Source: Polymyxa betae A26-41
Lineage: Eukaryota; Protista; Endomyxa: Phytomyxea
Direction of reading: 5' to 3'
DNA: 64,000 bases
Assembly: GCA_003693705.1 (NCBI GenBank)
Contig: RBZT01000348.1
Coordinates: 88,886 to 152,885, forward strand
Shown here: piece by piece, positions 20,827-27,300 of the stretch
Layout: each line of letters opens with the position of its first letter
Position numbering within the stretch: position 1 is the stretch's first letter
Made by a program: the position numbers and the translations under genes
Notes under the pieces: model-generated
Database searches by the model: none
The model's input: the letters and a program-made list of their open reading frames with translations, nothing else
What the model was told of the DNA's origin: nothing

Positions 20827-21354
20827 CGGTCTTTGAATTCACCGATTTTATTAGCTCGGCATTAAAGTTGCCCGTACTGGACCGGACCCGGCCCACTGAT
20901 CGCCCAGTCATTGCCGATCGATAAGCTTGGGCCAGTCCCGTCCTGCGACAATCGGCAAGATGCAAATCTTGCTTCCCTGAAGGAAGGTACTCACCGTCTT
21001 ATGGATTACAGCTGCAGGTGTGATAGATTGTTCTTGGGGTCAGACGAAACGATCTGATGTTCGCCTGACTAGCTGGAGCCATTCGGAGTGGCCGAATCAA
21101 GCCCTGACAATTCAATGGGCTGGTCAATGAGGAGCCGAGACAGCGACCGACAAAACAGCGCGTGACATGACGGCGACTGGCGCGGCCCTCTCGCTCACTG
21201 CGCCTTTCTAACTTAGCGCGGACGACAGGCCGTAGCGATAATTTCATGGCGAAGCGGCGCCCCTGTGGCAGTGAGTTTTGTGCACATGTGCGGAGCGACT
21301 GAGGGCGTGACCTCCTTCCCTCTTCATGTCCTTTCACCATCATTCTATCAATCC

Positions 21355-24300
21355 ATGCTAGACAACATCACCGAGGTCTGGATCCGGTCCGAGTCGGCGA
21401 GCCAGGCGCCGCGAGGCGCTCGCCCCGATCTGGCCATCGATCGTCGAACGCCTCTTACGCCACAATGGACCGCCTATCTAATTGAGAATGACATCAGGTA
21501 GATTCGCCTTGTTCGCTCGTTATCTGCCAAAAACATTGTATTTAGTGTCACTGTTGAGTGCTCTACAGAACGGGCTTATCAAGACGAGGAATATGACCGA
21601 TGCGGCTGCCGTATGGTTGCAACTGGGTCGTGGACATCAGCTCCCAAATCGGCGTTGATTTTGGGCTTACGACTTCCAGAGCCTCTTCCCTCAACGATTT
21701 CCCATGCACACGCTTTTTTTTGTCACGCTTATAAAGGCCAACCAAATTGGCATCGGCGCCTGCTTCCGTTTCTCAAAGGCGATTCCGTTCTGTATGACCT
21801 AGAGTATCTTGTAGACGAGAACGGGCAGCGTTTAGCCTCTTTCGGCCAGACTGCGGGATCTATTGGACTTGCAACGTAAGGTTTTCTTCGACTTTTTAAC
21901 ACTGTTTTCTTATTCGCAACACAACAGAGGACTGTTCGCATGGTCTCGTCAAGTCTTGGCAAACAGATTCCCCGGGGTGTCTCTGCCGTCCAATATGTTA
22001 TCAGGAATGACGATGAACAGCGTGGAGACATTGCTACGAATGGCTGAGCAATGGACACAGCAGAAACCTCGCTGTCTCGTCATCGGAGCTAATGGCCGAT
22101 GCGGTCGCGGAGCCGTCGATTTCGCTGCATCCGCCAATGTCGAAATCGTTTGTTGGACCCGGGCTGATACTGCTCGTGGTGGTCCCTTTCCAGAGTTGCT
22201 TGATTTCGATATTGTCATTAATGCGATTCGCATCGATTCTGGTGATGCGTCGCTCTTCCAACCATGGCTGACCAATGAACTCATTCGAAGAGAGCCCCGA
22301 CGTCTTTCCGTGATAGTAGATATCAGCTGCGAGCCGAATTCGATGTTAAACCCATTCCCTCTATACAAGCAGGCGACCTCATTCGAGAGACCGACGTTAA
22401 CGCTAATCGAGGCTCATGATGGACATTCTGCTCTTGATCTGATTGCTATTCCGAACCTGCCGTCTCTACTGCCAGTCGATAGCAGCAACCAGTTCAGCGC
22501 TCAGCTAGCGCCCCTGCTGTTCGACCTTCTCATAGAACGATCTGCAAAGGTCTTGTTGCCAGCCGGTGCTGCTTTCCACGCAGCTGTTTCCCCTCTGGTA
22601 ATTCCGACTTTATCGAATAACGCTGCTAGAGTTCCAGCAGCGGATACCGAGGAGATCTCGTTCGATGCGGTTGCACTTGCAGATGGCTTCAACTTTGACA
22701 GCCTTCGATCCGCTGTTGAACAGCAGATCAAGCCTATGTTGAAATCAATCATATCCGGTTTAGAATTCGGTGATAAGAGCGGCGGAGGAAAAGTTGTGCT
22801 GCAGGATTACGACTTTGTAAATCGATGTGATGATATCCGGGACATCCAGCTGGTCTACATGAACTTGATGCGCAACCAGGAGTATGCACTTACTCGAGAA
22901 CGACCTCTTCATATTCTCGTATCGCGATCTCATCTATCGGTCGCTGCTCATGGTGCAATTCTTGACCAGATTTCGGTGACGTTGCTGGCCAAGTATCTAG
23001 CAGAAGGCGATTTCTCGTTGACGAAATCAAGTTTGTCGAATTTGCAGTATTGTGATTATGCTCGATGGTTTGCCGAGCGACTGGAGGAATTGAAAACCGG
23101 TAACGATCACGATGGGCTTTTGCTTTTTCGTGATGATCAGCAGTACTGGAAGCAAACACTGCTTGCTGGTGATGGGCAAATTGTCAGCGCCCAGTTGCCA
23201 ATGGATCTATCGCCTTCTCCAATGAGCTGGTAAGTCTTATGCAAAGATGGTATTCACAGCGATATAACTTTTCGGCGATCCAGGAAATTCACGACTCAAA
23301 AACGCCATACTGTCCCACTCCTGTCATCAGTGCTGCATTATCCAATGCCTGTGCAGGCTCTGGCAGCATTGTCACTCATCATTTATCGGCGTACGAACGA
23401 GCCCGATTTTGTCATCGGGACCCGAGCTTCCTTTCGTAATAGGTGATGCCTCTTTTTCTCGGGTTTTGGATGCTTAGAATTCGCAGATATTCACTAAAGC
23501 ATATTTTTGGGCCTTTCGAGGATCGGTCCATTCTGAGGCTTTCGCTGGACAAGGACATGACTGTCAAGGCATTGCTGGAGCAATGTATGCGTCAGTGGGA
23601 AGGCGTCGCACTACATCAAGAACTACCACTGCGCCATCTCAACACTGATTATGCTCATCAAAATATCGAATTCATTGCCGAATCAGAACTTTCTGAACGA
23701 TTCAATCTCACTGAGCCGCAGGGCTCCTACCAAATTCGCTTCCGTCTGTGGCCGAATTCGTTTCTAAGTATCGATTATGATCCGGGAACATTCCTTCCTG
23801 AATCCATCACTGAACTGGCAAATCAAATCTGCTTGATTATTTCCGAACTGAACGAAAGCCTTCATATATCGACTCTGGACGTTAAATTGACGACACGAAG
23901 TGCCAGGCACCTTCTTCCAGACCCGACCCAACCCCTCGATTCTTCTTATCCTGGCCCGATTACTGAAGTTTTTAAAGAAAACTGTTTAAAAACCCCAGAG
24001 GCCATCGCCATATCGTCGGAAGGTATGCAAGAAACCGCTTTGCATCAATGCTTTAACGGCTCTGCTCAGATGTTTCTATAACGTATGGGCGACTATACGA
24101 GCATGTTTCATGGTTAGCTGGACAATTACGATCAGCTGGTATTAGACGTGGTGACATCGTTGCGATATACGGTGACCGCGTCCCGTCTGTTGTTTGGGCT
24201 ATCATGGGCGTTCTATTCTCTGGAGCTGCGTTGTCCATGATGGACCCCCGGTACCCAACCGAACGACTCATTGCATGCTTGGGCATAGCTAAACCGCGAG

Positions 24301-27300
24301 CTTGGATTGCTGTGAAATCTGCTGGCGAAATCAGCAGCGAGCTATCTTCTTTTCTTGACAAAGACTTGAACCTGGTGGCCAAAATCATACTGCCGCCGCT
24401 GGATGAGACGACTGATGTGCTATCACTTAGAGCTGCTGCACCGACTGAGGATTTGGAGTTGCGCTCAGATAATGTCGGTTTCGGCCTAGAAATCGATCAA
24501 GACGATATCGCTGTTGTGACTTTCACATCTGGCTCAACAGGGCTGCCGAAAGGAGTTTGTGGCCGTCACGGCCCTCTGACACATTTCTATCCATGGATGA
24601 GAGAAAAGTTCCAGTTCTCTAACAAAGACCATTTCAGGTTAGTGTCACCGTTTGGTCATTATTTTGAACTGATCCATTGCCAGTATGTGCTCTGGGATTG
24701 CACACGACCCTTTGCAACGCGATATTTTCACGCCATTGTTTTTCGGCGCTCGCATCTGCATTCCTAGCGACTCTACGATCAGGGAAGGCCGGTTATCTCA
24801 GTGGATGGAACATGCCAGAATCAATGTCTCATGTTTAACCCCGGCCATGGGGCAGCTTCTCACAGCGTCGTACAATAGTGGTGATACCCCACCTCTTGAA
24901 TGCTTGCGTTCCGTATTCTTTGTTGGTGACTGCTTGATGAAATCGGACGTTATTCGGCTCCGCACAATGGCACCGAACGCTACCCTTGTCAACATGTACG
25001 GGTCAACCGAGACGCAAAGAGCCGTCGGGCATCTTGTTGTACCAGTTGACATCAACCCGATAAAAGACGTCGTTCCTGTTGGGGCTGGCATGTGCGATGT
25101 TCAGCTTCTAGTTATTAATGAGGCTGGTAAACTAGCGGCCATAGGCGAGCGCGGTGAAATTTACGTTCGTTCGCCGCATCTGGCCAGAGGTTACCTTGGT
25201 CTTTCTGAACAAACGGCGGAGAAGTTCATTTTAAATCAATTCTTGGACAAGCCCGATCCACACGATAGAATGTACTTTGAAGTTGCTTTTGATCGATGCA
25301 ATCTGGGCGTAATGGTTTGAATAGGTACCGAACTGGGGATTTAGGACAATATAATTCACGCGGCTGGGTCGAGTGTTGCGGTCGTTCCGACGATCAGGTT
25401 GGCTCCATATGATCCGTGCATCTATATCTTGACTGTTAGCAGGTTAAAATCCGTGGATTCCGTATCGAGCTAGGTGAGATCAACGCTCGATTATCTCGGC
25501 ACCCTTATGTCAAAGAATGTGTCACAATTGTCGTAAACGAGGACGGCGGTAAGCACAAGTCTTTTGATGTGAATTCAACTTGATCGATGAATCGGATTTG
25601 TTGTGGCTAGATAAGCTGTTGGTTTCATTTGTTGTGTTGAACATCGAGATTGCATCCCGCGACAAAGACGTCGAAGACATAGTTGCTGTCTTAAAAGTAG
25701 ACCTACAGAGCTCGCTGCCGCATTATATGGTCCCAGCAGCAATCCATATCATCAGCTCGATGCCGCTGACGCCGAATGGCAAGATCAATCGCAGCGCTTT
25801 GCGGGCGCCGCGTCGCGAATCGATGCATCAGCCTCCGGCTATATTAAATAATACTCAGGAGAAGATCGTGCAGGTTTGGAACCGTCTCCTGCCCAACGTT
25901 GGCGAGGTCAATATCGATGCGAACTTTTTCGATCTGGGCGGTCACAGCTTGTTGGCAACGCGACTCATAATGGGTATGTAGTAAGGTCTAGTCTGTCATT
26001 CTGGCTCAAATTGTAATTCAGAGTTGTCGCGATCCTTTCATTTGACGATTCCCTTACAAACATTGTTCACAAACGCCACGATCCGTTCTCTTGCAGAAGC
26101 AATCGACTCGCTAGGCGGGGATCGCAAGTGCGACGACCAGAATAAGATGCCGAATCTTATAGAAGATGTGAACTATAATTGGTGTTCCGATATTGAAATT
26201 GCCATTCAGAAACCGAATGATGAAGTGAAGAACGTTCTCGTAAGGATGTCGCTTTCTGTTGTGCCGATCTTTCAACTTATTATAGTTGACTGGATGCACT
26301 GGTTTTGTCGGCTGCTATTTATTGGTAGAATTACTTCAGTGCCTTCCTACAGCACAAATCCATTGCACAGTTCGTGCCGAATCTGGCGCTGCCGGTATGA
26401 TCAGGTTTGAAACAGTTTTACGTATTTCTGCACTTACCGTGTTTACCTCATCATCAGGATCTGTAAAGCCCTTCAAAGTCACCTGCTCTGGCGCGACGAG
26501 TTTCAGAATCGCATTACTCCTATCATTTCGGATTTCTCAAAACCGAACGCTGGCTGGACCGACGTATTCCGCTTTGACGATACGGTTTTCCATAGTAGCT
26601 TATTTTTCTAGGAAACTGTCACGGAAATTTGCTCGAAAATTGATATCATCGTCCATAATGCTGCTCATGTTCACTGGCTGCTGCCTTATGATCGGTTGCG
26701 GGCCGTTAACGTTTCCGCTACCGAATTTTTCCTAAAGATCGCTGCCAACCTTAAGTTGAAACCATTCCATTTCATAAGGTGTGAATGTTGACTTCACTGT
26801 CACGTCTGTGCTCAAATGTTATTGCAGCACAACTTCTGTTTTGGAATCTGCCCAAAACAAAGATTCGTCCAAGAAAATGTTACTCTTGGAGTCTGCACTG
26901 AATGACAATTTTCGAGGTACTTACAATTCAGAATTGTGTTTGTCGATTTTTACATGGTCATCCATTGAACTGGAACGATTGCTCAGGTTTGAGCAGTGGC
27001 TATGCCCAATCAAAATGGGTTGCCGAAAAACTCGTGAGCGAAGCCAGTTCTAAAGGAATCACAGGTAGCTCAGTTTGTAAGGACTCGATAATGCTTCTCA
27101 TGCTATGCTTCAGCCAACATCTATCGGCTGGGTTATGTAACTGGCGATTCCCGTACCGGTATCAGCAATACCGATGATTTTTTGGTTAGGTTAATGCAAG
27201 GTATTGTAGTTCTATACGACAATCTCTGTGTAACCATTCTTCGTAGGCTGCATTGAACTGGGGTCCTGTCCTTTTATGGAGTTTGTTGACGGTAGGAGTA

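Follow-up and report, generated by a model that had tools for sequence, protein, structure and literature searches.

What could a Lys1-like domain be doing at the front of a Lys2 protein when the catalytic lysine of Lys1 is missing from it? The question is raised by a gene of Polymyxa betae A26-41 located in a 64,000-nt stretch of contig RBZT01000348.1 (assembly GCA_003693705.1, positions 88,886 to 152,885, forward strand), referred to here as the window; coordinates without a contig label are positions in this window, and residue numbers are those of native yeast Lys1. The alpha-aminoadipate pathway is usually described from fungi, in which Lys2, Lys9 and Lys1 are separate enzymes. In P. betae, the Lys1-like domain is the N-terminal part of the sole Lys2 (alpha-aminoadipate reductase) homologue in the assembly. 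Considering which residues are kept and which are lost, we hypothesize that it is a conserved, neofunctionalised domain that reduces an intermediate supplied by the module to which it is fused. This reading specifies a class of mechanism and no particular product, and we assign it a probability of about 0.45.

The gene is a single spliced open reading frame on the + strand and comprises the Lys1-like domain, a degenerate condensation (C) domain and a Lys2-type adenylation–carrier–thioester reductase (A-T-R) part. Exon 1 (21355..21497, +) contains the start codon, the WIRSE strand and the motif IDRRTPLTP, as defined by translation, profile alignment and spliced contigs. Exon 2 (21546..21875, +) encodes the AlaDh_PNT_N lobe, supported by Pfam PF05222 (E 2.4e-9), by alignment to 3ugk_A (E 1.5e-21) and by column statistics, and the first part of exon 3 (21928..22545, +) encodes the dinucleotide-binding lobe of the Lys1-like domain, supported by 2q99_A and 2qrj_A (E 7e-26) and by a weak match to PF01262. 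The domain is expressed and spliced in frame. Intron 1 (21498..21545, +; GT..AG, 48 nt) is supported by the joint 21495/21544 (cut +2) in spliced contigs of runs X1 and X5 and by a frame check, and intron 2 (21876..21927, +; GT..AG, 52 nt) by the joint 21875/21928 in spliced contigs. These contigs come from two public studies, match the gene at 100% identity and have 17 GT..AG introns removed; the introns predicted from sequence inside the Lys1-like domain are exactly those removed in both studies. An exon-by-exon phase check found the frame uninterrupted from the start codon to at least residue 1622. The raw RNA runs X16 and X11 yielded no reads here, a result that does not bear on expression. 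The possibility that the fusion is an artefact of annotation or assembly was rejected, since exon 3 is one open frame in which the dinucleotide-binding lobe runs into the condensation-like region, and the spliced contigs of both studies join all exons; it is also contradicted by the same domain order in the intron-less homologue P0002 and in complete transcriptome open reading frames.

A phmmer search against all PDB chains returned yeast Lys1 (3UGK, 2Q99, 2QRJ) first for both lobes, with E-values of 1.5e-21 and 7e-26, whereas the LOR part of human AASS was a far weaker match (E 1e-7). Yeast Lys1 (EC 1.5.1.7; PDB 2Q99, 2QRJ, 3UGK, 3UH1) is thus the best match in both sequence and fold, with the same two-lobed AlaDH/PNT architecture and shared DxSCD and NPxPxY motifs; it is, however, a free protein, whereas the P. 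betae domain is fused to Lys2 in a genome that also encodes a separate canonical Lys1. HMMER alignments to 3ugk, 2q99 and 2qrj place the differences precisely. K77 is replaced by Arg (21670-21672, CGA, +) in the exon 2 motif ILGLR-LPE, in which E78 is gapped; R130 is replaced by Gln, and A134 by Ser. In exon 3, Thr-Arg (22157-22162, +) stands in place of D227-I228, and Pro (22451-22453, +) and Asn (22454-22456, +) in place of D319 and H320. The retained residues include R18 in exon 1 (21445-21447, +), H96 (21724-21726, +), K99 (21733-21735, +), Q101, E122 and R131 in exon 2, and the GxxGRCG loop, which reads GANGRCGRG in exon 3 (22085-22111, +). The original prediction, made from the sequence alone, had listed the substitutions around K77, D227 and D319/H320 together with retained H96, K99, E122, R131 and GxxGRCG equivalents, and both lists are borne out by the alignment; translation likewise reproduces the strings it quoted and their positions, namely the Arg codon CGA at 21670-21672, the stretch starting at 22151 and the Pro-Asn at 22451-22456. 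Its insertion of about ten residues after WIRSE is real as well: a 15-residue loop in exon 1 (21394-21438, +) replaces the K13 loop of yeast, which has 4 residues, a net insertion of 11.

The roles of these positions are best known from yeast Lys1 and from human LOR. K13, E16, E78 and D319 of Lys1 reportedly have kinetic roles established by the Cook and West enzymology, and a yeast K77M mutant is reported to be about 100-fold slower rather than dead. In human LOR, Lys93 and His111 are the catalytic residues, equivalent to the yeast pair (PMC13763937, citing Kumar et al. 2012); Arg39, Arg146 and Gln116 are ligands of the saccharopine carboxylates, and a Lys114-Asp358 salt bridge, conserved from yeast, latches the two lobes together (PMC13763937). 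By alignment, these correspond in yeast to the catalytic pair K77/H96, the ligands R18, R131 and Q101, and the latch K99-D319; the role of K77 as acid-base catalyst, assumed in the original prediction, agrees with the literature cited in PMC9490328 and PMC13763937. Within the window, all the saccharopine/2-oxoglutarate carboxylate ligands (R18, R131 and Q101, plus K99) are present. His96 is also present, while Lys77 is replaced in the window and in all fused members, and the inter-lobe latch is broken, with Pro at position 319 in 11 of 11 fused sequences as well as in the window. Judged by alignment, the ligand-binding residues and His96 are thus intact and an NADPH signature is present, but the base, the glutamate next to it and the latch are gone. 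The substitutions support the earlier view that this Lys1 homologue has ceased to be a canonical enzyme that forms lysine with NAD, and the domain probably does not make lysine.

To separate family variation from clade-specific change, 144 non-fused homologues, collected by exhaustive HMMER search, were aligned to a profile for which 59 stand-alone sequences had been used. Position 77 is Lys in 84 of 88 non-fused sequences, and two of the exceptions, both Arg, are fragments of fused genes (P0016 and P0072, the latter from Paulinella); in the fused clade it is Arg or Gly. Position 319 is Asp in 131 of 139 non-fused sequences and Pro in the fused ones. The other two positions behave differently: D227 is Asp in 105 of 141 non-fused homologues, with Gly in 21 and Thr in 10, mostly followed by Arg, and T, G, S or R followed by Arg in the fused clade, while H320 is His in 89 and Asn in 46, against Asn or Thr in the fused clade. 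Canonical sequences have Lys77 in 98% and Asp319 in 99% of cases, whereas a non-Asp residue (G/T/S) occupies position 227 in about 26% of stand-alone homologues and Asn occupies position 320 in 33%. The non-Asp227 state requires at least 15 changes on the C-terminal-lobe tree; since D227 varies so often and H320N is frequent, both count as ordinary family variation. A column scan for positions with conservation of 75% or more among canonical sequences but no more than 20% among fused ones returned only seven: K77, E78, A134, D227, E230, G234 and D319. The changes form two sets, one in the acid-base and latch network (K77, E78, D319 and the exchanged K13 loop) and one in the cofactor loop (D227 with the Arg after it, E230 and G234). 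Of the substitutions discussed above, only the loss of K77, the change at E78 and D319P are specific to the fused clade in these alignments. The idea that all the listed substitutions are special was rejected for D227 and H320. The opposite concern, that these positions vary freely among bona fide Lys1 proteins, holds for the same two positions and fails for K77, E78 and D319.

These statistics bear on the suggestion that Lys1/LOR chemistry (saccharopine to and from lysine plus 2-oxoglutarate) is retained with NADP(H), with Arg77 or another group taking over from Lys77, whether poorly or adequately. In that case a single polypeptide would perform both the third-last and the last step of lysine synthesis, or it would return lysine to saccharopine as a buffer. 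The three saccharopine carboxylate ligands and H96 are indeed kept, and stand-alone homologues with a W[G/T]R motif (P0014, P0051, P0084, P0135), which resemble the fused domain in having Gly or Thr and then Arg in place of Asp227 and are presumably NADP(H)-dependent, make NADP-type Lys1 enzymes plausible. These homologues differ, however, in being unfused, in having arisen many times apart from the fused clade, and in retaining K77 (23 of 23) and D319 (27 of 29), whereas no member of the fused clade has Lys at position 77 and Gly occurs there. In addition, NADP+-linked oxidation of this kind is thermodynamically unfavourable in vivo (PMC9490328), and the same genome encodes a canonical NAD-type Lys1. 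We therefore regard retained Lys1/LOR chemistry as quite improbable.

The residues found at position 77 suggest another alternative. Among fused members in which this region is readable, Arg occurs in seven and in the window, and Gly in the P0274 cluster, while position 319 is always Pro. The Lys-to-Arg change could have produced an NADPH-dependent 2-oxoacid reductase, with His96 as the acid and Arg77 polarising the carbonyl, that forms 2-hydroxyglutarate or 2-hydroxyadipate; alternatively, the domain might aminate 2-oxoadipate to supply the A domain. A His/Arg catalytic pair is typical of 2-hydroxyacid dehydrogenases, including those of the lactate dehydrogenase type, and the domain keeps H96 and the R18 and R131 clamps for a 2-oxoacid carboxylate, to which most members add the guanidinium of an Arg at position 77. 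Such activities nevertheless seem very improbable, considering the Gly at this position in the P0274 cluster, the Lys kept by amino-acid dehydrogenases of the same fold, the lack of a known pathway needing such products beside Lys2, and the continued conservation of Q101, a ligand of the third (lysyl) carboxylate that a simple reductase would not need.

The cofactor loop points toward NADP(H). All 12 fused-clade sequences scored, the window included, have T, G, S or R followed by Arg at positions 227-228. Human LOR is NADPH-dependent and has Ser266 and Arg267 at the place of the yeast Asp (PMC9490328), and cryo-EM of LOR with NADPH and saccharopine shows both residues in contact with the 2'-phosphate (PMC13763937). 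The switch from NAD to NADP proposed in the original prediction is accordingly strengthened by the parallel between Thr-Arg and Ser266-Arg267 and weakened as a distinguishing feature by the loss of D227 in about a quarter of stand-alone homologues. Judging from this motif, the domain probably uses NADP(H), not NAD(H). For LOR, it has been argued that a site of the NADP(H) type makes reduction the likelier direction in vivo (PMC9490328), and a reductive role is favoured for the fused domain on the same grounds. The LOR/LKR region of AASS (EC 1.5.1.8; PDB 8E8T, 8E8U) is similar in further respects: it shares the fold, its NADPH determinant at the Asp227 site is likewise a hydroxyl residue with Arg next to it, and it is fused to another lysine-pathway enzyme. 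It differs in being only distantly related to the P. betae domain (TM 0.65-0.70), in retaining the catalytic Lys93 and the Lys114-Asp358 latch, and in having a C-terminal Lys9-type saccharopine dehydrogenase (SDH), not Lys2, as its partner.

The fusion is not restricted to P. betae. The same arrangement was found in Phalansterium solitarium (Amoebozoa), Rigifila ramosa (CRuMs), Paulinella micropora (Rhizaria) and several metagenomic clusters; these homologues, intron-less or transcript-derived, are 1772-1930 residues long and contain AlaDh_PNT_N, Condensation, AMP-binding, PP-binding and NAD_binding_4 domains. On the Lys1 tree, the fused Lys1-like domains cluster together (13 fused rows and two short fragments, SH-aLRT 88). 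The origin of the domain is a duplication of Lys1. On the Lys2 tree, the fused proteins lie within a protist clade, interleaved with C-A-T-R proteins without a Lys1-like domain; one protein that appeared to lack the domain, P0168, is the second half of the Paulinella gene, separated from its first half. A single origin of the fusion with subsequent losses is plausible, though not proven. Literature searches turned up no account of a Lys1-Lys2 fusion, an SDH fused to a nonribosomal peptide synthetase (NRPS), or this active-site variant, and databases carry automatic names only for the fused proteins.

Structural modeling and sequence identity both speak to the integrity of the domain. An AlphaFold model of residues 1-400 of the intron-less homologue P0002, built with a 66-row alignment in which the window exons were separate rows, has a mean pLDDT of 92.6 and a pTM of 0.92, with values of 72-86 confined to the insertion loop. 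This homologue stood in for the complete P. betae domain, whose exons were searched separately. Foldseek placed six yeast Lys1 entries first (TM 0.79-0.89), followed by human LOR, alanine dehydrogenase and transhydrogenase dI; for 2QRJ, 2Q99 and 3UH1 the TM values were 0.81-0.89. This close homologue is thus confidently predicted to fold as a complete two-lobed Lys1. Fused orthologues are 45-49% identical over the Lys1-like region and 41-47% over the remainder, so that the Lys1-like domain appears to be under constraint comparable to that on the Lys2 part. General pseudogene-like decay was considered and rejected, given that about seven conserved positions differ and that orthologue identity equals that of the Lys2 part. 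Recurrence of the substitutions across the fused clade excludes chance, and the pattern, as read from the alignments, is one of targeted remodelling, not decay.

Remodelling may, however, lead away from catalysis. In the main rival explanation, the domain is a non-catalytic pseudo-enzyme that binds NADP(H) and/or saccharopine, lysine or 2-oxoglutarate, and either regulates the Lys2 module allosterically or docks the Lys1 domain of a separate Lys9-Lys1 protein, giving a Lys2-Lys9-Lys1 assembly. Several features fit: the main acid-base residue K77 is gone in every member and its replacement is not fixed, E78 is variable, the K99-D319 latch, on which the stability of the closed active form depends, is lost, and the K13-loop insertion ranges from none in the P0274 cluster to about 30 residues in Paulinella. 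The adjoining C domain is likewise a non-catalytic relic, and canonical Lys1 and Lys9 are encoded elsewhere, apparently as a second fusion. Against this, the Gly-rich loop, the NADP-type motif, H96, Q101, R18 and R131 are kept across Amoebozoa, CRuMs and Rhizaria, although a pure metabolite sensor would not need selection for cofactor specificity, and divergence is confined to about seven positions. On balance, we consider a pseudo-enzyme rather unlikely.

The genomic context of the remaining lysine pathway was assessed by searching the P. betae assembly (27,085,814 bases, 1001 contigs). A Lys9-like region with Sacchrp_dh_NADP and Sacchrp_dh_C domains is located at C1:37074-38647 (+), running into a canonical Lys1 at C1:38872-40288 (+) that contains LWIRAEVKPGELR, GLKE, WDLAET, VNC and SIDHLP. 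The database model of this Lys1, P0050 (405 aa), starts in the apparent C-terminal helix of Lys9 (KRPVYLELYDLILSEMEQKGVKFSEQ), which makes a Lys9-Lys1 fusion likely from the sequence, in biosynthetic order and the reverse of that in AASS. An AASS-type bifunctional gene, with an LKR lobe followed by Sacchrp_dh_NADP and Sacchrp_dh_C, lies at C839:184558-188340 (-; loci L009, L015, L020 and L021). In total, P. betae has three Lys1-type and two Lys9-type domains. The Lys9 Pfam domains PF03435 and PF16653 have no match in the fused Lys1-like domain and match at C1 and C839 instead. With a separate Lys9-like region and a canonical Lys1 present, the lysine pathway does not need the fused domain for Lys1 or Lys9 activity. 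The earlier proposal that the domain substitutes for Lys9 is weakened by these two loci and by the kept Lys1-type carboxylate triad, although Lys9-like activity on a different fold is conceivable. Upstream in the pathway, a homocitrate synthase-like gene (C729:76790-78211, +) and a homoaconitase-like gene (C592:173615-176084, -) each cover the full profile exon by exon, which suggests that P. betae retains the upper aminoadipate pathway. For Plasmodiophora brassicae, by contrast, impaired lysine synthesis has been reported (PMC4471660).

Without the Lys that deprotonates the amine, there are two options, either base-free chemistry on a pre-formed imine or a carbonyl, or no chemistry, with a regulatory or docking role. 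Under the reductive reading that we prefer, the domain would bind NADP(H) in preference to NAD(H) and could still bind a saccharopine- or 2-oxoglutarate-like polycarboxylate, whereas the Lys77-dependent amine deprotonation needed for formation or cleavage of saccharopine from the lysine side would be lost. What could remain is an NADPH-driven reduction, proceeding without a general base, of an intermediate produced by the fused module. A candidate substrate is the spontaneously formed cyclic imine of aminoadipate semialdehyde, whose reduction would yield pipecolate; alternatively, the pre-formed imine of the semialdehyde with glutamate would yield saccharopine. In either case, the reactive aldehyde would be captured at its source. 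A more specific version, in which a Lys1-fold NADPH-dependent imine reductase or reductive aminase receives the semialdehyde, open or cyclic, straight from the R domain to which it is tethered, we consider unlikely.

Several points weigh against a reductive enzyme. The substrate and product proposed here are purely inferred. The presence of Gly77 in the P0274 cluster means that no new catalytic role can be assumed for the Arg, and the pathway, with a Lys9-like region and a canonical Lys1 encoded elsewhere, does not need the domain. If the domain made pipecolate on the side, it would draw on the same intermediate as lysine synthesis and compete with it. The kept carboxylate triad suggests that saccharopine would bind in the Lys1 orientation, which argues for Lys1/LOR over Lys9-type chemistry. 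Residues that are otherwise retained also vary, with E122 being Ala in P0002 and K99 being Thr in Paulinella. Finally, the 233-aa fragment P0005, which has the AIPNL motif and groups with the fused clade, retains Asp227 (WDSSDT), so that the cofactor motif is not uniform.

The remainder of the polypeptide is of Lys2 type. It resembles the TIGR03443 family end to end, in its A-domain motifs, carrier and R domain. A linker and a near full-length condensation-type domain occupy 22546..24022 (+), as supported by PF00668 in homologues, by motifs and by TIGR03443 over the C-terminal half; within this region, exon 3 ends at 23229 and is followed by exon 4 (23284-23442, +) and exon 5 (23487-24022, +). 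The Lys2-type adenylation domain is encoded by exons 6-9 (24070..25548, +; PF00501, E 1e-30 and 4e-23), consistent with motifs of fungal Lys2 and with exon frames, and its substrate-pocket motifs, including NMYGSTETQ, are the same as in fungal Lys2. Exons 10-11 (25611..26239, +) encode the end of the A domain (AMP-binding_C, PF13193) and the carrier domain (PF00550), and exons 12 onward (from 26286, +) the thioester reductase domain (PF07993), with TIGR03443 exon matches to 27214 and two more introns beyond 26985 in addition to those listed from reads. The window exons cover TIGR03443 profile positions 168-1205. For fused homologues, the match extends over profile positions 2-1377 and reaches 856-1026 bits, just under the cut-off of 1030.1. 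In the P. betae genome, TIGR03443 matches only the exons of this gene, plus one marginal hit (E 8.7e-4) elsewhere; the assembly is about 91% complete by CEGMA (PMC6328671), and a second Lys2 copy is unlikely.

The condensation domain (22780-24022) lacks the second His of the HHxxxDG motif, as in every fused and non-fused protist member seen; in other members the motif reads MHQIIADEQS, AHRLVADEAS or SHSIIVDKWS. Members of the protist Lys2 clade thus have a full-length C domain without this His, in front of which the fused members add the Lys1-like domain, whereas fungal Lys2 has only an N-terminal remnant of roughly 225 residues, corresponding to the C-terminal half of the C domain. This comparison suggests that the N-terminal 'activating' domain of fungal Lys2 is a truncated C domain.

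The 17 introns of the gene (window 21300-27299) are all very short, at 44-70 nt, and all GT..AG. The spliced contig of run X5, at 10,290 nt, is far longer than the coding sequence and may extend into a neighbouring gene. Upstream lie housekeeping genes (GST, CBF/Mak21, Pet127 and a PI-kinase). A fungal secondary-metabolite cluster was considered as the context and rejected in view of these neighbours, the plasmodiophorid source and an A-T-R part that is the only Lys2; the frame of reference of the original prediction was wrong in this respect, as the gene belongs to a plasmodiophorid (Rhizaria) and is not a fungal secondary-metabolite NRPS. A segment of the gene (22470-23393, P0001) has been deposited at NCBI under Beta vulgaris subsp. 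vulgaris as the partial hypothetical protein BVRB_020480 (KMS94531.1), encoded on a contig of 983 bp, which is almost certainly P. betae contamination of the sugar-beet assembly.

The changes in the fused domain fall exactly on residues to which enzymology has assigned the roles of general base, modulator of that base, latch between the lobes and selector of the cofactor, and provide a compact case of either enzyme neofunctionalisation or pseudo-enzyme regulation within a primary pathway. They also matter for annotation, as pipelines name the fused proteins "L-aminoadipate-semialdehyde dehydrogenase" or split off fragments as "saccharopine dehydrogenase (NAD+, L-lysine-forming)", a name that is probably wrong for the fused domain. 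If the more specific reading, with direct transfer from the R domain, is true, one protist protein would take aminoadipate to saccharopine or pipecolate, with Lys9-type or piperideine-6-carboxylate (P6C) reductase chemistry on a scaffold not known for such chemistry; together with the Lys9-Lys1 gene, this would suggest that several protist supergroups channel their lysine pathway. As a parasite of beet roots, P. betae is biotrophic and unculturable, and its amino-acid capabilities inform its dependence on the host.

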